From Syncephalis fuscata S228 (lineage: Eukaryota; Fungi; Zoopagomycota), in assembly GCA_025786725.1 (NCBI GenBank), contig JAHLTZ010000005.1, forward strand, positions 372,001-436,000: a stretch of DNA of 64,000 nt, given 5' to 3'. Both the position numbers and the translations under genes were made by a program. Numbering within the stretch: position 1 is the first letter of the stretch; each line of letters starts with the position of its first letter. Below, piece after piece: positions 37,739 through 52,053 of the stretch. Under the pieces are notes generated by a model. It ran no database searches and was not told where the DNA came from. It was given only the letters and a program-made list of their open reading frames with translations.

Positions 37739-38463
37739 GCATTATAATCGCCAATATACTAGTAATCATTTCATTAAGAAATAACTTGGGAAATTTACTG
37801 GCTACATAAACAATAAAGCGTGTTTAGTATAAATATTGCGTATTTGTCAGATAGAGTATTTATTTATTGACTTACTAACTTGTAATGAATGCAAATTTCA
37901 AATAATTAAAAATAGACATCGTGTACAATTAATACTTAATTGCAAGCTATTTTGAATACTTAAATATTTATAAATAGCTTTTATTTGCAGTAATGATGTT
38001 ATTGTTATGAAATGGCATTATAGCTTAGTTTGATGTGTTTAGCCCAAATCAATATTACAATATGTTTAACATTCTAAAGATTTTGAGGCATATATTCCTG
38101 AACGTTGTCGTACTCTGGATTATAAAGTCATGACATACAACAAATCGAGTGTAGAAAAATAGTCATAAACGATACACACTGGATATATCAATTACGTGAA
38201 TGGCTACATGATCTATTTTTAATCCAATATATCTTTACTGTTGTGTATTTAATTAAATGATATAGTGTAATGTATATATAACATACACTTGCATTTCTAA
38301 TACTGATAGACAATAAACAAACAATATTAAGACAAGCACAATTACAACAATCAAATCTTGTTCGATGGCTATATGAAACCATAACAGTAATTTGTTTAAT
38401 ATTTAAAAAAGCTTCCGTTTGTACTATTTGTCGATACATAACTTAATTACGAGCCAACTAGCT

Positions 38464-39300
38464 ATGAATGACGACGATAGTAGCCAGGACTGGTTGGAGC
38501 GAGACGAGGACTGGCTAACCTACTCGGTATTACCAAGTAATGCCGCTCAAACAGCTGAGAAGGAAGACGAAAACCGAAAAGTAAAACGGCTAAAGCGCGA
38601 TGAGCCCTGCAATGACAATAACGACAAAACAATAGATAGACCAGGACAGACTTGTGTTATATGTCTATTGCCATGGACACGACGTACTTATTTAATCGAT
38701 TGCTTGCACAGTTTCTGCTTTGACTGTATTGCTCGATGGTTGAAGCATCAGCCAGTATGTCCACTTTGTAAACAGCCACCACGATCGATTGCTATGCTGG
38801 CTGAAGATGACAACAATGAAGACAATACTAGCAATAGTGATGAGCTGACAACTGGACAGTTGATTCATCGCACGCTTGATGAATTAGAGCCACCACCCTG
38901 TTTACCAGGAAAATGGCATAATCGTCGTAGTGTTTATCGTCGTTCATTGCGTGCAGATAATCCACCTCGCAATGTAATTGTATCACGAATTAAGACACAT
39001 CATTTACGACGACTACGACCATTTGTTGAACGAGAATTAAGTGCACTTCTTGGTGACGATAACGATGATATTGTCATGACGTATACCATTGAAGTGCTAC
39101 TAGATACGACACCATCCTTCGTCACTGCCTCTAATAGCGACAGCGATGACGTATGGCGTGAACGACTTACACAACGTCTTGCTATTTATCTTGGCAATGA
39201 TGCAGCAGTATTTCTACGCGAGATTATTACGTTTCTTGAAAGTGGTCGTGATATGAAAACATTTGACCACACAGTAAGTTATACGGCAACCTCGCCATAA
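38464..39300 (+). CDS. C3HC4 RING E3 ligase (Topors/Psh1-like), copy A
   Basis: CVICLLPW..CLHSFCFDCIARW..CPLCK; C-terminal LRPFVERELSALL and FLREIITFLESG..FD as in Topors-like RING proteins. Confidence 0.85.
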   Translation: MNDDDSSQDWLERDEDWLTYSVLPSNAAQTAEKEDENRKVKRLKRDEPCNDNNDKTIDRPGQTCVICLLPWTRRTYLIDCLHSFCFDCIARWLKHQPVCPLCKQPPRSIAMLAEDDNNEDNTSNSDELTTGQLIHRTLDELEPPPCLPGKWHNRRSVYRRSLRADNPPRNVIVSRIKTHHLRRLRPFVERELSALLGDDNDDIVMTYTIEVLLDTTPSFVTASNSDSDDVWRERLTQRLAIYLGNDAAVFLREIITFLESGRDMKTFDHTVSYTATSP

Positions 39301-39376
39301 ATGACACAAGGCAACAAATAGCTATCAAACCATTGTATTTATAAGCAATAAAGCATTTATTACTAGCGTAGACTGT

Positions 39377-40513
39377 TTAGACAAATAGCGTCAACACAGC
39401 AATGACAAAGGCAACAGCTGATACACCACCAATGCTGCTAGCTGTTTTGTCGCTGCCATTGTTACCATTGTTGTCATCATCGCCATTTGTGGAGTTTGTA
39501 ACATTCTTGACTGGCCATAATATTTGACCGCTACAGCTACTTTTTACAAATTGTGGTGGATCTCTTAAAGTGAATACGTCTTCTGAAATAACAAAATAAA
39601 GTGTTGTACCAATGATCTTGCCATTATCACACTGTAAATTAATCTTGCCCTTAAGCCCAAGGTCTTTCTTTAAAGCATTTATAAATTCATCACTATTCCT
39701 TCGATCTCCAGGCTTAATACCAGCATTGATAAAAGCATTGGAAGGGCTATATATTTTGAGATACAGAGTAGCATCACTGAAATAGTCGATCATATCTTTG
39801 TTAGCCTTGTAATCTTTACCGTAACACTTGGGATCAGTGTAGAAACACAGGTGCCGTATTTGTTCCATTCACGAGTCCTAATAATAAATTAATTAAAAAC
39901 AATATGCATATTGTAATTTCATTACCAAAGTCCACTATTGTAACCTTTTTTTGAGGGCCAATACGTTATCATGCTGTCATACTCATCCCCAAAATTTGAC
40001 TGGAGTTTAGTACCAACGCTCTTGTACTGACGTTCTGAGTCACATCCATCTTCAGGTGGAAGTTCACCATTACTATAATTTAGTGTTAATTGGCTATTTA
40101 TCATTTATAAGCTGTACAACTTACCAACCAGTGGGTGAAATCCATGGATGGTAAAATTATTGGTTGGCCCTAATGTTGTGTCCCACTAGTAATTGTATTA
40201 AAACACCGCCCTTTATTACTGTTATTATTATGCCTTACTCGTAACACAAGTTGAAGAAGACCATATTTTGGAACACAACAGAGGTCAGTAGTAGTCGTGT
40301 TGGCACTACACGAATAAAAATCTGGACAATTATTTCTGTATCGATGTAAACTAACTCGCATGCCATTAATATAATCAGGTAGTATAAGCGTACCAGCCAA
40401 TGACGGACTAAGTCCGACAAAAGCAAAAGAAGCAATAGTAGCGACGATAGTCTAGTATAGATTTGTATTGACAAGGTAAATAAGACAAATGAAGACTGAC
40501 TCAATTGCTTCAT
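39377..40513 (-). CDS. RNase T2-like protein, predicted catalytically inactive copy; signal peptide and GPI-type tail; 4 exons
   Basis: DLCCVPKYG, FTIHGFHP (CAS I altered), TYWPS, LWTREWNKYGTC (CAS II His to Arg and His to Tyr). Contains 1-nt indels. Confidence 0.85.
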
Positions 40514-42071
40514 GTCTAATTAGCTTGCATTAATAGAATTAGAAGGAAATTATGTTGAGAAATACAAAGCTAATATAGTGTAGACAATAAATGGCGACTA
40601 GAGTAAATAAAAAGGGATACTGCAACGATAGAAGATAACACACTGAGTGCTAATTTATTGGTAAAATTCCGGTTTTTAACTGACTGCTGAGTGGATCATG
40701 CACGTTATTCTGTGTGTTTGTGTTTGAAACAAGGCAATGCTTTAATCCTGATAATAATATAAACAACTTGTTGCATTATGCTGGCTTCTATTAAAAATTA
40801 TATTAACAAATATACTCTTCTACATTCATGCTTTATTATTGGTATATTGAGTAATGATCGAAATGAGCAGATAAAACTTCCCCTGATTCAATTAAACAAA
40901 ATTAAAAGCTGACACTAAATAAAATATGAATGAAACAGATATCAATACTACGACTGTAGCATATGCTGGAATGACTGAAAATGCAATAGTAGAGCAAAGT
41001 GCAGATTATTTAAATAACAGAAAAAGCGTCGAGCGTGTGGCAGTTTCAATCATGTAAATAACAGCATTTCATCAAGAATCGTGGCATTCCAATAACTACG
41101 TTTGATAACATACGCGTAGTTAGATTACAAATTTGATTGGCCGAACATGGTGCCGAGTGGAGATAAATAATGATGATTGATTATTTAGTTATACTGTGAT
41201 TGATGGTCAAATGGCTATGTTTAATAATACTCGTGTAATTGAATTAGACATTCTTTTTATATTTGATATAGATTTCAATTATATATAGTTTAATAGATGG
41301 AATGGGCAAAATAAGTTAAACTTTATTATTAATAAAGTTAGAACAAAACGGACAACAGTTCCAAATAGCTTGTAAATACTATAATATATATATATACAAT
41401 ATAATGATTATACAATACAAAGTGAAAATTAACAGTGTTGAAGCTATTGAGCACATATGCATGAACAGATGAACGACATTAGTCGACATTTGTATATAAT
41501 AAAGCTAGAACAAAAGCACAAGCAGTTTTGGTTAAGCATAGTTGGATAAGTGTAAAATAATAGATGATAGAATAAAGACACAATGGCAAAGCATAGAAAC
41601 ATTGATGAAGTTATAGTGCATACAACGTAATAAGCGAATGAGTGAAATGTATTGAAACATATAAACAATAGAGCGTGTTTAGTATATTATAGAATGATAT
41701 ATAGTAGTGTAGAATAGAATGGGAATGATATAAATGGATAGAGTATATATGCATACTGGATAATGGATCTACGATGATGAGTATTTTAAACTTTGATGTC
41801 ACGCATCATACACCATCATGTTCAATAAAAAATATTTACTTTAATTACGTGAATGCTATCAAGTAGTCATTGGGATGTGATTATCATTGATGGCTAATAA
41901 ATTGCTTAATTTTAATGCAATACATACGTAAATAAAATCCCTTTTATTTACATGCGTTGAAATTGTCAGGAATAAAACGTAATTCAGTTACTTCATTTTT
42001 GTTCTAGCTGGATATTAACACATCCTTCGCATCTCTTTATAACAAACTAGTCTACGACCGTTTACCGCGAC

Positions 42072-43516
42072 ATGCTGCCCGAAGATTTGATTATTTATGT
42101 CTACAAATTCCTTTCTCCTTATGCGTTACGTCAGTTATCTTGTTCCAGTCGTTTATTTTACCAACTAGCATGGCATGAGATTTGTTGCCGCTATAAACGT
42201 TTAGTCAATTCAAACTTATCTATATTGCCGGCTTTGCTAGTAAGTACTAAAGCGCGCCGAAAACAATACAAAACTTAACAGCACTGAATGACTGCAGGAC
42301 CGACAAAGCTACTGGTATTTAGTTGGCCAGACCTGCTATGAATGCACTGTCCGTTCAACATACTTGATACCGCACCCGTTAGAGCCATGGCTTCTTTGCG
42401 ATGTGTGTATATCAAAATTGGCAACTGATCGCGTGCTATTGACATTAAGTCAGGTTGAAACGCTATATGGATTGGTGTCGGATGGTCTAGTGGCTGATAT
42501 ACACTCAGGACGAATGCGACGATGCGATTTAGCATACAAAAAATCACCTAGTCGACATAGCGTGTGTAATTTTTCTATGGCTGCGGTTTTAACATCAGAT
42601 ACTTCGGAAAGCAGCGATAGTGACACATCAGAAAGCAGCAGCGAAAGCGATTTTAGTAATGGCCATTCGCGCTTTTTTCAAAATCCACCAGTAAAACTAC
42701 CAATGTATAGTATAGCTGCTCAATCATCAGTCAATAGTGATTTGGAAAGTAGGAACAATTCTTTTACATTAGTATTCTATTATCAGCATATTGAGCAGCG
42801 CGCTCGCGAAGTATATGGAACATCAGATACAAACAAATTAGCGTCACGATCGGAACGTGATTTGACTAGAAAACGCCAAATATTTCTGGAAATGGAACAA
42901 AAGAAACGGCACAAATTTATGTACAGTATACTTAATACATGGCAATCAAACCCCTTGATAACTTGGAGTTATTATGGACAGGAAAAATATTAGCCTTTTT
43001 GCCCGATACTTTAACGGCAGCCAAGTCAATAACAACGCCGTTGTTAATAGAAGAAAGTAGACACGCACTGATGAAAGCTCAATTACAAAAGCTTATTATG
43101 ACAGATGGACACGAAAACATCCTTTTGGATGGTGTGACCAGCAGCGTATTACTTGGATACAGCCAAGATGCATCGCTAGTAATATAGCTAATAATAACAC
43201 ACAAGTATGCAATAGTAGCATAGAAAATGTGCTGTTATTAGCAAAACGTTTATGGAACATGCAATTTGCAAGTTCATTTGCAAAAAATGTATTCGATACT
43301 ATAAATATTTTATTGTTCCGTTTTACGCGACCTTCAGCGTCAGCATCGACGAAAAGCAGCTTTAAATCGACAACTGTGCCGGATAAGCAGGCACTTGAGC
43401 CCATTTGGGGCTGTGGAGAGACGCGACAAGAGCTATTGGAGTACATGGCGCAACTCCAACACAATATAACCAATAAGTTACTAACATTCATGGAAGATGA
43501 TATCAAACTATTGTAA
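42072..43516 (+). CDS. F-box protein of unknown specificity, multi-exon
   Basis: N-terminal F-box LPEDLIIYVYKFLSPYALRQLSCSSRLFYQLA. Downstream ORF pieces are linked by introns or frameshifts. Confidence 0.7.
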
Positions 43517-43677
43517 AGCATTGGTATCAACGACAAGATAGCAAGGCAATAGCTAGCAACTTGGATAGGCGACGAAAAACGGGAAAGCGTCGTGGCCGTC
43601 AGTAGAAATGAAGATTGTGCATGTGTATGCAGTTAATTGAGTAGAGTTATATAACTATTGCTTGAAATAATGTAAAG

Positions 43678-45481
43678 CTACGGTACCAATGGCAATAAAT
43701 CACGTACACTTGCATCGTTGGCATGTAATGCAAGTGCACGATACAACTCAGGCGGCAGTTGTCGTGATAGTGATAGTGCATCATTGATCGTTTGATGAAT
43801 ATCACCATCCAATCCATCGGAAAGAATAGAAAGTGGTCTATATAACAGTGTGGTAAGTATTTTTGTACTGGTTAATCGGTTGAATAAACAACTTACTGGT
43901 CAGCGGCAAGTAGTAAGTCACGCGAATGAATCAACTGTGCTACTACGCAAAGTACATTGATGTGGATGCCATAGGCAAGAAAAACATCCCATAGCCGTAA
44001 ATGGTCCTGTTGATTCATCGATTTACTACAGCTTGTAAAGGACAGTAAAGCTAAATAAATAGATTAGCTTGGGTAGTGCATTAATAAAGCATTATATCTA
44101 CCATTATATGCGTACAACTCAGGGAATACACCATGGTCAAGTAAATAGTCGTATAATGGACGATCAAGAACACGTAAACATTCATCCATCAACTATAGTT
44201 AAAAGTGTTAGAATGGATATGTATTTGGTCATTTATCTGTAACATACCTCTACGGCACACTGGATACCATCCATTGTTGTACGTGCGTATACCGATGCAC
44301 ATTTAGTAGCAAACAAATAAAAACCAACAAATGCCTCATCTTCGGGCAATACTTCGGCAAATGATAACGCTATCCAGTGTAAACCTGAAACGTAGTCTTT
44401 TGTACCATTATCAGCAGTATCTAAAAATAGTTTCAATAATAAATAAACAGTAATAATAATATAGTATAATGTCATTACCATGAATTTGATGAACAAATGC
44501 ATTGAGTATTCGATCTAATGATTCTACAATTCTGTGCTGTTCTTTAGCTTGAATAGAACTACTTAACAAACGATTTGAATGTTTTAATGTAGCAAGATCA
44601 TGCTGAATTTGTAAATGCAAAACGGATGCACCACGTGTTTTTAGTTCTGGATAAATACACCGAAGTTGGGTAAAATTTCCCTCACGTGATAGCAAAGCAC
44701 GCCAAAGCCGACGTCGTAGATCATCATGCCCAGCAGGAATGGGATGGACAAGCGCAAGACGTCGTAAATGTCGCTCGGCCAACGACATATCCGATAGACA
44801 CTGGGTGTGACTTCTTGATTCTTTATTATGACCGATGCGTGCAAGACTAGACGGGCTCATGGCTGAACGAGCCATATCGTCAAGTGCATGCTCGTACCGC
44901 TGTCGAATCGAGTCACTTGTGTCGCTTTCCGTGCCTGGAAATAATGGCGATAAAGGTAGAGCAACAGTACCAGCGGTAGGTAGACCAGCATTGGAACCGC
45001 GAGTATTTCTAGCTCTTTGTAACCAAGCATCAAATTCTGTCGCGCCAGAATGTCCTTTATTTTGCATCATTTTTGGAGGAGAGGAAGGAGGAGTAAGAAA
45101 GCGTGGTGCGGTTGTTGGTGTAGTTATTTTTGTCGTATTCGTCTTTGTGACAGCAGCAGCAGCAGATAGACGCGATAGTCTTTTTGACAAATCGGCCATG
45201 CTGCTTTTAGTAGCTGCCGTACGACCTGCCGTGCGTTTGCGTGGGTATGACGATGTCGGCGACGATCGACGGCTGGACAACTGGCATATTTTGTGGGAAC
45301 TATTTGATGTTACTACAGATGCTATTGATATTGAAACTGATGATGGTAAAGATGGCGATATTAATGGCGATGTTGTTGAAGAAGAAGAAGAAGAAGAAGG
45401 TGATAATGATGGCACTGGCGACGTTGGCAATATCAAAGAGGAAAGCAACGCTCCTAGCGACACACTGGATGGTAAAGACAT
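43678..45481 (-). CDS. BUB2/Cdc16-like TBC-domain protein with degenerate catalytic fingers, multi-exon
   Basis: LRRRLWRALL, SLDRILNAF, EDEAFVGF, ECLRVLDRPLYDYL, ELYAY, LWDVFLAYGIHINVLCVVAQLIHSRDLLL, LPPELY match the Bub2 pattern. Long Ser-rich N-terminus. Confidence 0.8.
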
Positions 45482-46428
45482 GAATAACACAAGTACCAGG
45501 AAAAACGTAACTGATCTTTGATGAAATAATGACGCTATAAGTAGACAATCGTTAGCAGGGAGGATACGTGTGTGTGTGTGTGGTGTGTGTGTGGAAGGAG
45601 TATTGTTGTTGCACTTTCTTGGACGTATTATCGTCCGTTTACAATACAAGGCACATTAAATAATGAAGTGATACGCGAATGTATCAAGTTTCCTGCAAAA
45701 AAAATGAGGCAAGGGGAACAATGTATATTCGCCTATGCTATTATGTAGTACTGTTAGAGCTACCGTGAATGCAATAGTTAGAATGTGATGGATGTTACAA
45801 ATGTTGTAGGAGTACTATATACGCAGGCTATAGTAATAAGCTTGTATAACATTAATGTAACAACAGTCATGTTCAATAGCTATTATTCTAATAAAAAAAC
45901 TGTCATCATTCCCATAGTGAATGTGCCAGTCTTTATCCGACATGCAAAAAGGAGATAAGGGGCAAAAAGAAACAGCGAGTAAAGCCAAGCGTAATCATTG
46001 TTGAATTGGCAAAGTCTATACTGCTAAGTCAATGGCTGTTCTTAATATACCGATATATAGTGTAATCCGTGCATATCGAATACTGATTACTTTCATCTTT
46101 GCTTGAATAGCCTCTATTTTACGCAATATAATGCAGCTTAATGACTAAACGCGCTTGGAACAATTAATACAAATCACTTGGAATCCTGGTTTTATTATTT
46201 ACGTAGAATATTCGTATAGAAACGGGAGTAGTTTTATGTATCCATATCGACTATACATAGAACCGTGGAACAAATAGGCGTTCTATAGTTATTTTGCCTG
46301 TAATAATAATAGCTTAATCATTACTATATTAAATCATTGAATCCAATTATAGCATAATTTAAATTGTTTACTATTTATTTTTTACTGTTTTCTTTTCATT
46401 TATTGAATCTCTTGTTTCAAGTCTAGTC

Positions 46429-47384
46429 ATGTCAACGTGTTGGATTACCGAGTTGCCCGAGCTAGTCTCTCTAGAGCATGTACGCCAGTTGGAGGGCGGC
46501 CGCGAAGCCTTGCCGCTTGGCACTTGGATTATACGTCATCATCAGCCGAATGTAACGATCCAAGCTGTTCCTGCCTTGGAACCATCGTTAAGCAAAGGAG
46601 ATCTTTATGTGACAGAAAGGTAATAATAAAAATAGTAAGCGAGAATGAAGGGAACTGCCTTGACTGGATAACAAGTAAATAAGGGGCGAATACTGAACAA
46701 AGAGCAAAGGACAAAGAACAAAACAATCGATGTATTATTGTTCACTATCTAACTATGTTCTATGACAATCGGTAATATGGCAACAATAATAGCCGCCTTG
46801 TATTCTTTAGTGCTACTGATGGAAAAGGTATTGCACTAGAGTATCCAGCCATTGGTATTCATGCAATTGCTCGTCAGCCTACGGATCATGCACCTTGTGT
46901 CTATTGTCAAGTAGATGGGAGTCTTGCAATGACACCAGCAAGCGATGACGATGAGGATGACAAAGACGATGAAGTAACGGAAGTGCGCTTTATTCCTGAT
47001 GATTTTAGCACACGTAAGTAAAACACAAATATTATTACTGATATATAGTCGTGTTGATAAATATATATTTAGTGGATGTGCTATTTGAAGCTATATCTGA
47101 ATGTACCGCCCTTCATCCCGATGCGGATCTTATGGAGGCCGAAGGTGACGATAATGCATTTGTTGATGGCCAGTTCTACACGGGTGATCTTGATCCGCAA
47201 GAACTTTCTGACGCAGGCCAGGTAAGCCATACTATCTATGTATCTATCATTGTCAATAACACTGATTTGTAATAAATAGGCGGCACTTGCTTATCTCGAC
47301 TCAATTGTTGATGCACCGGTATCTAATGCACAAGCATTGTCGGATGAAGATACTACCAAAGACCAGTTTGCCGACGCCGACTAA
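46429..47384 (+). CDS. pICln/Lot5 (Voldacs domain) methylosome subunit, multi-exon
   Basis: GDLYVTE, GIALEYPAIGIHAIAR, CVYCQ, EVRFIPDD, LFEAISECTALHPD, AGQAALAYL, QFADAD*. Confidence 0.88.
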
Positions 47385-48896
47385 CCAATTGCACTATCAA
47401 TTGAATAAATGAGTAATAAAGTATGTTATTTTTATTAATTTAGTTTTTAATAGAGGCCAGCATAAACATGATAGGTCATTTATTTACGTATGTTATTGCA
47501 TTAAAATTAAGCAATTTATTAGCCATCAATGATAATCACATCCCAATGACTACTTGATAGCATTCACGTAATTAAAGTAAATATTTTTTATTGAACATGA
47601 TGGTGTATGATGCGTGACATCAAAGTTTAAAATACTCATCATCGTAGATCCATTATCCAGTATACATATATAGTCTATCCATTTATATCATTCCCATTCT
47701 ATTCTACACTACTATATATCATTCTATAATATACTAAACACGCTCTATTGTTTATATGTTTCAATACATTTCACTCATTCGCTTATTACGTTGTATGCAC
47801 TATAACTTCATCAATGTTTCTATGCTTTGCCATTGTGTCTTTATTCTATCATCTATTATTTTACACTTATCCAACTATGCTTTAACCAAAACTGCTTGTG
47901 CTTTTGTTCTAGCTTTATTATATACAAATGTCGACTAATGTCGTTCATCTGTTCATGCATATGTGCTCAATAGCTTCAACACTGTTAATTTTCACTTTGT
48001 ATTGTATAATCATTATATTGTATATATATATATTATAGTATTTACAAGCTATTTGGAACTGTTGTCCGTTTTGTTCTAACTTTATTAATAATAAAGTTTA
48101 ACTTATTTTGCCCATTCCATCTATTAAACTATATATAATTGAAATCTATATCAAATATAAAAAGAATGTCTAATTCAATTACACGAGTATTATTAAACAT
48201 AGCCATTTGACCATCAATCACAGTATAACTAAATAATCAATCATCATTATTTATCTCCACTCGGCACCATGTTCGGCCAATCAAATTTGTAATCCAACTA
48301 CGCGTATGTTATCAAACGTAGTTATTGGAATGCCATAATTTTGGTGAAATGCTGTTATTTACATGATTGAAACTGCCACACGCTCGACGCTTTTTCTGTT
48401 ATTTAAATAATCTGCACTTGCTCTACTATTGCATTTTCAGTCATTTCAGCATATGCTACAGTCGTAGTATTGATATCTGTTTCATTCATATTTTATTTAG
48501 TGTCAGCTTTTAATTTTGTTTAATTGAATCAGGGGAAGTTTTATCTGCTTATTTCGATCATCACTAATATACCAATAATAAAGCATGAATTTAGAAGAGT
48601 ATATTTATTAATATAATTTTTAATAGAAGCCAGCATAATGCAACAAGTTGTTTATATTATTATTAGAGCAGTATGAGTTGTCATAGTCTTAGATACACAC
48701 ATAGAATAACGTGCATGATCCACTCAGCAGTCAGTTAAAAACCGGAATTTTACCAATAAATTAGCACTCAGTGTATTATTTCTATTGTTGCAGTATCCCT
48801 TTTTATTTGCTCTAGTTACCATTTATTGTCTACACTATATTGGCTTTGTATTTCTCGCTCAATTTGCTTTAATTCTATTAGTGAAAATAATTAGAC

Positions 48897-50008
48897 ATGA
48901 AGCAACCAAGCCACTCCTTGTTTGGCTTTTCTACTTTGCCAATACAAATCTATACTAGACTATCGTCGCTATTATTGCTTCTTTTGCTTTTGTCGGGACC
49001 TAATCCGTCATTAGCTGGTATCAATAAAGCGCTACCTACTCTCTTTCGACGCCAATTAAGCTGCCAAAGCTCAATCATGTAGCACCAGCGCGAGTAATGC
49101 TGACCTCTGTTGTATTCCAAACTATGGTCTTTTTAAATTATCTCTGCAGGTACGTATGATAAGAATAAAAAATAAAGGGCGGTGTTTTAATAAAACTACC
49201 AGTGGGACACAACATTAGGACCAGCCAACGCTTTTACTATTCATGGATTATGGCCCGATGGTTGGTAAGTTGTACAGCTTATAAATGATAAATAGCCAAT
49301 TAACACTAAATTATAGTAATGGCGAGCGTGCGCCTGAAAATGGATGTGATCAGAACGTCAGTACAAGAATGCTGGTAAAATTGTCAAGTCAAATGACCAA
49401 GATCTTTACAATAAAATGACAACGTATTGGCCCTCAAACAAAGGCACCGACAGTGGATTCTGGTAATGAAATTACAATTTATGTAAATTATATTTTAATT
49501 AATTTATTACTAGGACCCATGAATGGAACAAACATGGCACCTGTGTTTCTACACTGAGTCCCAAGTGTTACGGTAAAGATTACAAGGCTAACAAAGATAT
49601 GATCGACTATTTCAGTGATGCCATTACGCTTCGCAGCAAGTATGACGTTTACGATGCTTTCGCTAAGGCTGGCATTAAGCCTGGTGACCAGACGAATAGC
49701 GATCAATTTACAAGTGCTTTAACAAACAGTTTGGCCGCAGTCTTACTCTACGATGCGCTAGTGGCAAGATTACCGAAGCGATGCTTTATTTTACAGTTTC
49801 AGGAAGAAATTACGAACTGACAGATCCACCAAGATCCGGAAACAGTGGCTGTGGCGGTCAAATATCGTGGCCAGCTAAGACTACTAAAAACTCTACAGAT
49901 GGTAATAATGACAACAATGGTAACAATGGCAGCGACAAAACAGCTAGCAGCATTGGTGGTGTATCAGCTGTTGCCTTTGTCATTGCTGTGTTGACGCTAT
50001 TTGTCTAA
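48897..50008 (+). CDS. RNase T2 with canonical active site; signal peptide and GPI-type tail; 4 exons
   Basis: CAS I FTIHGLWP (His 49242-49244) and CAS II FWTHEWNKHGTC (His 49518, 49533); DLCCIPNYG, TYWPS. Contains 1-nt indels. Confidence 0.88.
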
Positions 50009-50084
50009 ACAGTCTACGCTAGTAATAAATGCTTTATTGCTTATAAATACAATGGTTTGATAGCTATTTGTTGCCTTGTGTCAT

Positions 50085-50920
50085 TTATGGCGAGGTTGCC
50101 GTATAACTTACTGTGTGGTCAAATGTTTTCATATCACGACCACTTTCAAGAAACGTAATAATCTCGCGTAGAAATACTGCTGCATCATTGCCAAGATAAA
50201 TAGCAAGACGTTGTGTAAGTCGTTCACGCCATACGTCATCGCTGTCGCTATTAGAGGCGTTGACGAAGGATGGTGTCGTATCTAGTAGCACTTCAATGGT
50301 ATACGTCATGACAATATCATCGTTATCGTCACCAAGAAGTGCACTTAATTCTCGTTCAACAAATGGTCGTAGTCGTCGTAAATGATGTGTCTTAATTCGT
50401 GATACAATTACATTGCGAGGTGGATTATCTGCACGCAATGAACGACGATAAACACTACGACGATTATGCCATTTTCCTGGTAAACAGGGTGGTGGCTCCA
50501 ATTCATCAAGCGTGCGATGAATCAACTGTCCAGTTGTCGGCTCATCACTATTGCTAGTATTGTCTTCATTGTTGTCATCTTCAGCCAGCATAGCAATCGA
50601 TCGTGGTGGCTGTTTACAAAGTGGACATACGGCTGATGCTTCAACCATCGAGCAATACAGTCAAAGCAGAAACTGTGCAAGCAATCGGTTAAATAAGTAC
50701 GTTGTGTCCATGGCAATAGACATATAACACAAGTCTGTCCTGGTCTATCTATTGTTTTGTCGTTATTGTCATTGCAGGGCTCATCGCGCTTTAGCCGTTT
50801 TACTTTTCGGTTTTCGTCTTCCTTCTCAGCTGTTTGAGCGGCATTACTTGGTAATACCGAGTAGGTTAGCCAGTCCTCGTCTCGCTCCAACCAGTCCTGG
50901 CTACTATCGTCGTCATTCAT
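50085..50920 (-). CDS. C3HC4 RING E3 ligase, copy B (1-nt deletion in the RING near 50630)
   Basis: About 99% identical to 38464-39300 (roughly seven differences counted by eye). Confidence 0.8.
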
Positions 50921-52053
50921 AGCTAGTTGGCTCGTAATTAAGTTATGTATCGACAAATAGTACAAACGGAAGCTGTTTTAAATATTAAACAAATTACTGT
51001 TATGGTTTCATATAGCCATCGAACAAGATTTGATTGTTGTAATTGTGCTTGTCTTAATATTGTTTGTTTATTGTCTATCAGTATTAGAAATGCAAGTGTA
51101 TGTTATATATACATTACACTATATCATTTAATTAAATACACAACAGTAAAGATATATTGGATTAAAAATAAATCATGTAGCCATTCACGTAATTGATATA
51201 TCCAGTGTGTATCGTTTATGACTATTTTTCTACACTCGATTTGTTGTATGTCATGCTTTATAATCCAGAGTACGACAACGTTCAGGAATATATGTTCAAA
51301 ATCTTTAGAATGTTAAACATATTGTAATATTTATTACAATACTAAACATGATTATACTATCGGTTGAAACTGTACTGAATTGGTTTGTCGTCAGTATACT
51401 AACAATGTGAATAATGGCAATGAAATGTATGGTTATTTTACTATATGCTTTATCAAATAAGGCACCCATAAACAAACAAGTTTTCTATAATTTTTATTAG
51501 TGTAAATGCAGCTATAAATACAATCTTGCTGGTATAATTGTATAATTTGATCATAAAAATAATGAATCGAAAAAAAAGATGACAATGTTACTTGGCAAAG
51601 ATTAGATCTAAGATTGTATGATCAAATCTATAGAATACAACTATAAATAGACAATTGATTGTTTATTGTTGCTTCATTATTCCATTTAATTATCTTGCAC
51701 GTTGTCATTATATTTGTATCAATAGCGCGTGTATGACGATGTAAGCTACTAATTTGAATTAAACATATTATTTAAATTCACCTTTTTAATTAACTGCATG
51801 GTTATTAGTTTCTATTTTGAGTTATTATTTACTTAATTTATTTTGATTTCATGCTGGCTATTATCAAAATACAGATTTCCCTCGCTTAAACAATAAAACC
51901 TATATTGATGGATATAAATCTAATGTCCTATAAATAAGCTAGCTATTTGCCGATTTTTATTTCGCTATTACAAATACACTTCATTTTACGTCTGCTAGTT
52001 TTTATTGCTGCAACAGCAATATTTATAAAATTATAGATATTAGACAAAGGCTC

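Follow-up and report, generated by a model that had tools for sequence, protein, structure and literature searches.

Can a ribonuclease gene without its catalytic histidine be maintained beside a canonical copy when the two lie in the arms of one inverted repeat, most of which is kept alike? This question is raised by a 64,000-nucleotide stretch of contig JAHLTZ010000005.1 (positions 372,001 to 436,000; the window, with coordinates counted from its first letter) from Syncephalis fuscata S228, which belongs to the Zoopagales and, within them, to the Piptocephalidaceae. Members of the genus Syncephalis are haustorial parasites of other fungi. The window carries a left and a right RNase T2 gene in opposite orientation, and a whole-genome search with the left gene finds a third copy on a second contig, C113 (G000:C113:265711-266851). 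The reading that we prefer, with modest confidence, is that the three genes encode one canonical enzyme and two noncatalytic surface proteins under weak purifying selection—the latter called Tyr-types here because of a tyrosine in place of the second catalytic histidine.

Active sites and surface signals of the three copies

All three copies belong to the RNase T2 family PF00445. At a cutoff of 26 bits, the NCBI protein models P0003, P0002, and P0001 score 85.9, 85.5, and 38.1 bits, respectively, and a profile scan of the genome itself also detects the right and C113 copies. The best sequence match is the reference RNase T2 of fungi, RNase Rh from Rhizopus niveus (1BOL), with an E value of 6e-32 for the right copy; residues are numbered by alignment to this structure. 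RNase Rh has the same layout of the conserved active-site segments CAS I and CAS II and the same 10-cysteine pattern as the S. fuscata copies. The right copy features the motifs FTIHGLWP and FWTHEWNKHGTC and, like RNase Rh, has His46, Trp49, Asp51, His104, Glu105, Lys108, and His109—hence, both catalytic histidines (His46 and His109) together with Glu105 and Lys108 are complete. The left copy features FTIHGF.. and LWTREWNKYGTC, and its CGT and TAC codons in CAS II fall on His104 and His109 (Table 1). The C113 copy is 87% identical to the left one, compared with 78% between left and right, and features FTIHGFHPTGC in a single frame, LWTHEWKKYGTC, and THEWKKYGTC. The Tyr-types differ from RNase Rh by Tyr109, His49, Thr51, Phe48, and Leu101 (Phe101Leu), with His49 read directly in C113, and by Arg104 in the left copy; of the two, only C113 keeps His104.

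The initial annotation had described the right-copy motifs, the two left codons, and their correspondence to His104 and His109 of RNase Rh, all of which is borne out by the 1BOL alignment with the strands read directly. It had also given Trp49 as replaced by His in the left copy. The Trp is indeed lost, but the codon reads CAN (His or Gln) because the exon 2 break sits inside CAS I, and the residue is probably His by analogy with the third copy. The enzyme and pseudoenzyme pair of that annotation has to be widened: as judged by sequence, the left and C113 copies form a Tyr-type clade within a family of three. Since both carry Tyr109, His109 was lost before they split. That C113 might be an allelic haplotig of the left arm was considered and rejected, the two being only 85% identical and having unrelated flanks.

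The changes in the Tyr-types affect positions that the family otherwise conserves. Among the 141 nearest family representatives (S. fuscata copies excluded), 140 have a histidine at position 109, and the right copy retains 58 of 67 conserved family columns, compared with 48 to 49 in the Tyr-types. Nine conserved columns are lost in both Tyr-types yet kept in the right copy, five of them within CAS I or CAS II. PMC3248902, citing Irie 1999, describes the CAS I and CAS II histidines as essential for catalysis. In several fungal RNase T2 representatives that are canonical in other respects and keep His46 and His109 (P0017, P0024, P0035, P0088, and P0041; one of the first three is from Neoconidiobolus thromboides), Tyr, Arg, Lys, or Glu replaces His104. 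The change to Arg104 in the left copy is, hence, less telling than that to Tyr109. The fold appears to be preserved. The AlphaFold model of the C113 copy has a predicted local distance difference test score of 85.3, and its best match among the structures of the Protein Data Bank is 1BOL, with a target-normalized TM-score of 0.87 and a root-mean-square deviation of 1.9 Å. Sixteen more T2 RNases follow 1BOL, and the Calystegia RNase-related protein (1JY5)—a T2 fold in which catalytic histidines are lost as well—is among the fold matches.

In the Tyr-type clade, the general acid/base His109 is thus replaced by Tyr and the base-binding residues are remodeled (Leu48Phe, Trp49His, Asp51Thr, and Phe101Leu), while the residues that determine the fold, including the 10 cysteines, are kept. 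The Tyr-types are, therefore, likely to lack RNA cleavage as far as their sequences tell. Alternatively, they might have retained ribonuclease or another phosphodiesterase activity through a rebuilt catalytic set in which, for instance, His49, joined by His104 in C113, takes the place of His109. In favor of this, Trp49His accompanies His109Tyr in C113 and probably in the left one, both Tyr-types retain His46, Glu105, and Lys108, and catalytic residues are known to migrate in proteins termed pseudoenzymes (PMC10211241). We consider such a rebuilt site improbable given the near-invariance of His109, the additional loss of His104 in the left copy, and the changed base-binding residues of both subsites; moreover, rice OsRNS4 is inactive with a Tyr at the same place (PMC12871459), though its CAS I histidine is lost too. 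As a side observation, an N-glycosylation sequon, NFT, lies two residues ahead of the CAS I His46 in the left copy (40161-40153) and in C113, whereas the right copy has NAF and no sequon. A glycan at this sequon of the Tyr-types would lie at the mouth of the active site.

The ends of the proteins set the three copies apart from RNase Rh, which is without an N-terminal extension, an Asn/Gly-rich linker, and a hydrophobic end resembling signals for attachment of glycosylphosphatidylinositol (GPI). As judged by hydropathy, the S. fuscata copies begin with an unusually long leader with a Leu-rich core at residues 22 to 32. At their other end, all three have an Asn/Gly-rich linker followed by SSIGG and a hydrophobic stretch of 15 residues. 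The tail looks like a GPI-attachment signal, from which we infer a location at the surface. Such a tail occurs in one of the 141 other family representatives, P0132, with a Ser-rich linker and a hydrophobic tail; because P0132 shares it, GPI-like anchoring of T2 RNases may have arisen more than once. The two window genes would accordingly belong to a lineage-specific RNase T2 subfamily that comprises three members and is marked by a hydrophobic leader together with a GPI-like tail. The gene in the right arm would be the canonical enzyme—provided that it is intact, as is argued below.

Table 1. Coordinates of the RNase T2 genes, their active-site codons, frame breaks, and repeat arms in the window (A2, three-way alignment of the copies; X1, public run)
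Feature	Position	Strand	Details
Left RNase T2 gene, Tyr109 type	40513-39377	-	four exons: 40513-40239, 40185-40125, 40072-39926, 39877-39377; PF00445
Right RNase T2 gene, canonical His46/His104/His109	48897-50008	+	four exons: 48897-49149, 49203-49264, 49317-49462, 49514-50008; PF00445
Left CAS II codons	39856-39873	-	CGT 39873-39871, Arg for His104; Glu105; Lys108; TAC 39858-39856, Tyr for His109
Left CAS I (FTIHGF-CAN-PTGC)	40126-40155	-	His46 kept; Leu48 to Phe; Trp49 to His or Gln; Asp51 to Thr
C-terminal tail	39377-39500	-	Asn/Gly/Asp-rich linker, small-residue SSIGG, 15-residue hydrophobic end; identical in left and right
Left exon 1 break, 1 base missing	40412/40413	-	extra base in left-specific X1 RNA contig (2 mismatches, depth 1015)
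Left exon 2 break	40136/40135	-	left spliced exon 1/exon 2 RNA contig aligns exactly 50 nt, 40185-40136, ending at the break
Left exon 4 break, 1 base missing	39833/39834	-	extra base in X1 contig, depth 2344 of 2907; G there in both other copies
Right exon 1 break, 2-nt shortfall	49060-49085	+	first two Cys codons 13 nt apart, 15 in the others; A2 columns 195-196
Right exon 3 break, 1 base missing	49348/49349	+	relative to both other copies; A2 column 477
Right exon 4 break, 7-nt gap (6 + 1)	49715-49735, ~49725	+	relative to the other copies; A2 columns 855-861
Left and right alike, C113 different	39773-39853	-	19 consecutive informative sites; right counterpart ~49538-49619
Inverted-repeat left arm	38129-41922	.	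~99% identical to the right arm outside 39482-40870
Inverted-repeat right arm	47494-51255	.	partner of the left arm

Reading frames and transcripts

The assembly places three frame changes in the left copy and three in the right copy as well, contrary to the initial picture of one clean and one indel-ridden gene. In A2, none of the 1-nt exon gaps is shared between copies, and all of them are missing bases, never insertions. The left copy carries three 1-nt gaps, C113 two 1-nt gaps, and the right copy one gap each of 1, 2, and 7 nt. At four of the six clean 1-nt gap sites the other two copies disagree with each other, and the near-identical flanks of the arms contain seven single-base gaps against 18 mismatches; for these two reasons the breaks are read as consensus errors of long reads, made where reads of paralogues were mixed. 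The breaks would then be mostly or all assembly errors; if all of them are, the three genes would be intact.

Transcripts agree with this wherever they can be compared directly. Contigs of four public runs were placed on the left arm at 80% likeness, so that contigs of the right copy are visible only in places where they reach 80% likeness to that arm. All three breaks that can be checked directly—left exon 1, left exon 4, and C113 exon 4—are absent from the transcripts. The extra base of the X1 contig at the left exon 1 break also occurs in a DNA contig of run X3 with a loose end at 40413. A C113-type RNA contig of 192 nt with 23 mismatches crosses the C113 exon 4 break without a gap; it fits the C113 copy, which itself has 24 mismatches there, and not the right copy, which has 49. 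At the left exon 2 break, the end of the 50-nt alignment at 40136 is what is expected if an extra base precedes the last 10 nt before a splice junction, which supports the missing base indirectly. The left-copy indels that the initial annotation had corrected for are, hence, absent from RNA at two of three breaks, one of them also from a DNA contig, with indirect support for the third. Its further description of the left copy holds: with N at the breaks, all three copies are free of stops (328, 328, and 319 codons), with 10 aligned cysteines each, and the left copy keeps its N-terminal hydrophobic region, GT..AG introns, and tail.

All three copies are transcribed, and the left and right ones are spliced. 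In left-specific X1 contigs, introns 1 (40238-40186) and 3 (39925-39878) are removed at GT..AG, intron 1 being retained in an X3 DNA contig; a junction of intron 2 was not recovered among the X1 contigs on the left arm. The right copy is represented by a spliced exon 1/exon 2 X1 contig, 16 unaligned letters of which are the end of right exon 1, and by four further X1 loose ends that spell right-specific sequence. The expression of both window copies, which the initial annotation had wanted confirmed, is, hence, documented by copy-specific spliced RNA contigs. The depth of copy-specific X1 contigs is ~680-1300 for the left copy, ~265-560 for C113, and ~870 for the right copy, compared with ~230-250 for the adjoining RING-finger gene, although contig depth is a poor measure of expression level.

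These contigs bear on two alternatives. The inverted repeat or the differences between the copies could stem from misassembly or mixed polishing rather than from three genes, and the assembly does have consensus errors in exactly this region, with arms that are 99% identical outside the gene. The RNA contigs are copy specific, with 0 to 2 mismatches for the left copy, 23 mismatches that agree with C113, and loose ends that spell right-specific sequence; the gene copies differ by 13 to 22%, and the flanks of C113 are unrelated. Such an artifact is, therefore, very improbable. The second alternative regards the Tyr-types, possibly along with the right copy, as relics that are still transcribed. 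Some breaks would be real, or the copies would be drifting neutrally after the loss of activity with no stop acquired yet. Direct transcript evidence covers three of the breaks, and the other five may be real. The RNA contigs contradict all three of the breaks that can be checked directly (one is also contradicted by a DNA contig), every break is a privately missing base with no insertion, and the transcripts reach at least the depth of the adjoining gene, all of which argues against relics; the evidence from substitution rates is taken up below.

The NCBI models of 185 aa (P0001, left), 180 aa (P0002, right), and 272 aa (P0003) each are truncated or jump the breaks. Single bases missing from the assembly among these paralogues account for the truncation of all three public models, and surveys of secretomes or effectors that rely on them will misread the family. 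Against a large protein collection, a 151-aa piece of the left copy matched only two NCBI models, and a 70-aa piece of the right copy, searched for the sequence at its breaks, matched nothing. Among metagenome contigs of the Joint Genome Institute, the pattern across the exon 3 break, written with N{0,1} at the break, gave 0 matches. Run X6, which carries the same species label, was considered as a second strain and left unused: over 38100-41950 its contigs differ from the assembly almost only by C>T (114 places) and G>A (135 places), a bisulfite-like pattern.

Selective constraint and conversion between the arms

The ratio of nonsynonymous to synonymous substitution rates (dN/dS) was computed on the joined coding sequences with N at each break. 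Pairwise, it amounts to 0.54 between left and C113 at a synonymous divergence (dS) of 0.23, 0.57 between left and right, and 0.51 between C113 and right. For single branches, with converted tracts left out and one-sided P values against neutrality, it is 0.51 on the left branch (P 0.048), 0.63 on the C113 branch (P 0.11), and 0.70 on the right branch plus stem (P 0.033). In a neutral simulation, the chance that no stop arises is 0.22 for the left copy and 0.07 for C113. Because Tyr109 is common to two copies at a dS of ~0.23, with a dN/dS of 0.54, no stop, and all cysteines, the histidine-less form is argued to be maintained. These values hint at weak to moderate constraint on the Tyr-types. 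The maintained pseudoenzyme of the initial annotation, hence, stands as far as transcription, the shared Tyr109, and the lack of stops go, but constraint is only weak to moderate (per-branch P 0.05-0.1).

The same numbers can be turned toward relics. A dN/dS of 0.5 to 0.7 is high, the tests per branch are marginal, the left branch alone would be free of stops by luck in more than a fifth of simulated cases, and the triple knockout of the Tetrahymena thermophila paralogues Rnt2D-F is without a phenotype (PMC3248902). Two independent Tyr-type lineages keep the frame, the 10 cysteines, and the core residues, and the joint chance of no stop is ~0.016; in addition, losses are concentrated in the active site and not scattered. 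Together with the transcripts, this makes relics unlikely. The preferred reading of noncatalytic surface proteins combines a preserved fold and a rebuilt, probably noncatalytic cleft with weak constraint, each single test being of moderate strength. The Tyr-types would have lost RNA cleavage and been kept as putative binding proteins with RNA or something else as their ligand, and noncatalytic binding at the surface of the parasite is their most likely role as judged by sequence. The decoy, RNA-binding receptor, and self-protection roles put forward in the initial annotation are candidates of a hypothetical kind.

Outside positions 39482-40870, the arms of the inverted repeat are ~99% identical; within this stretch, they differ at 20 to 38 per 100 columns. 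This diverged stretch corresponds to the RNase T2 gene in each arm. Site patterns in A2 group the left copy with C113 over most of the gene and with the right copy in parts of the leader, in intron 2, in columns 666-747, and in the tail (runs test P<1e-5). The tract of 19 sites begins 3 nt past the Tyr/His109 codon, and the tract in intron 2 begins just past the CAS I differences. The pattern is consistent with a mosaic of gene conversion between the arms. Three causes fit the edges of the tracts equally well: selection against overwriting the state of the active site, conversion halted by divergence, and chance. In the proposed mechanism, selection, or divergence itself, would keep the active-site blocks distinct while conversion homogenizes the rest of the arms. 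In primate L/M opsin genes and in the arms of palindromes, conversion homogenizes flanks and introns, and the decisive codons stay distinct. This likeness is an evolutionary-genetic analogy only, and selection at the boundaries of the S. fuscata codons would be drawn from it by analogy. The locus offers a compact case of enzyme and pseudoenzyme genes kept distinct within a converting inverted repeat.

Several points weigh against one canonical enzyme with two noncatalytic surface proteins. The tool that supplied the X1 run labels it ‘RNA?’, and the RNA nature of its contigs is established through spliced joints. For the right copy's three breaks and the tail break of C113, the reading as errors comes from the alignment, and for the left exon 2 break it is indirect. 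His46, Glu105, and Lys108 remain in the Tyr-types, which have a new His at position 49 in addition. Constraint is weak with marginal P values of 0.05 (left) and 0.11 (C113), only two Tyr-type lineages are at hand, and the left copy may have been patched by conversion from the right one. The GPI anchor and the signal peptide are read from hydropathy by itself. Finally, an exhaustive HMMER search with P0001 returned only the three S. fuscata proteins at the 1e-30 level and no Tyr-type orthologues elsewhere, leaving no deeper tree on which to measure constraint. The nearest relatives in other species, from Thamnocephalis, Tieghemiomyces, and Smittium, have ~40% identity or lower and canonical motifs.

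Related systems and neighboring repeats

Dead copies of RNase T2 are known from plants and ciliates, and the Tyr-types of S. fuscata would be a fungal instance of this phenomenon. OsRNS4 of rice has the CAS II His-to-Tyr change, is without RNase activity in assays, and works via RNA binding (PMC12871459). It resembles the Tyr-types in carrying this change within the RNase T2 fold. It differs in that its CAS I histidine is also lost, to Lys, and its RNA-binding residues are kept, whereas the base-binding residues of S. fuscata are altered. OsRNS4 and the plant S-like RNases, furthermore, have neither a GPI-like tail nor a partner in an inverted repeat. Rnt2 D/E/F of T. thermophila have Asn and Tyr in place of the catalytic histidines and no known function (PMC3248902). 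Like the Tyr-types, they are lineage-specific paralogues beside active members and keep the structural cysteines; unlike them, they have lost both histidines, lie in tandem and not in an inverted repeat, belong to a ciliate, and have no membrane anchor described.

The RALPH effectors of powdery mildews, such as CSEP0064/BEC1054, are secreted RNase-like pseudoenzymes of a haustorial biotroph that bind and do not cut (PMC6464244). For a mycoparasite that forms haustoria, they suggest a possible functional parallel, although their fold is different (RNase T1/F1, not T2) and they are delivered into plant cells instead of being anchored. Carried furthest, the analogy would make the Tyr-types surface-anchored pseudo-RNases at the host interface, which hold host RNA uncut or sequester a host factor directed against the active enzyme, with the catalytic codon kept distinct by selection despite conversion to within 3 nt—a T2-fold counterpart of RALPH effectors and OsRNS4. 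This fuller scenario is speculative, and we put it forward as a tentative proposal only.

The initial annotation knew of no earlier description. Literature searches found no fungal RNase T2 pseudoenzyme and nothing on S. fuscata RNases, which upholds this for fungi; the same CAS II His-to-Tyr change has been described outside fungi (PMC12871459, PMC3248902). If functional, the Tyr-types would be the first fungal RNase T2 pseudoenzymes as far as these searches go, and they would join a very small set of RNase T2 proteins that carry a GPI-like anchor; they come from a little-studied group of mycoparasites.

The genome contains three more RNase T2 loci: C310:17312-20722 (L004) and C310:25905-29201 (L002), which lie 9 kb apart on one contig, and C59:119-3394 (L003). 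All three have the canonical HEW.KHG motif (HEWYKHGS in L004) and none the GPI-like tail, and frame breaks were not seen within the compared parts.

The arms of the inverted repeat also carry a duplicated RING-finger gene (38419-39300, plus strand, and 50085-50965, minus strand). The left copy is a single frame of 293 aa to which RNA contigs fit without gaps. The right copy is broken by one missing base at ~50631, probably another consensus error.

On C113, the third RNase T2 copy and its upstream region lie between inverted 737-bp elements (C113:264897-265633 and 267438-268172). The resulting unit of 3.3 kb (264897-268172, L007:687-3962), whose flanks are without similarity to the window, may represent a piece of DNA that a mobile element carried or duplicated. 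In the window, the inner ends of the arms (41091-41827 and 47589-48326) each represent a copy of a dispersed repeat that matches 76 or more places in the genome at 72 to 79% identity, often as inverted pairs 3 to 5.5 kb apart. The read depth over these ends is very high in every run. This repeat may have seeded the inverted duplication.

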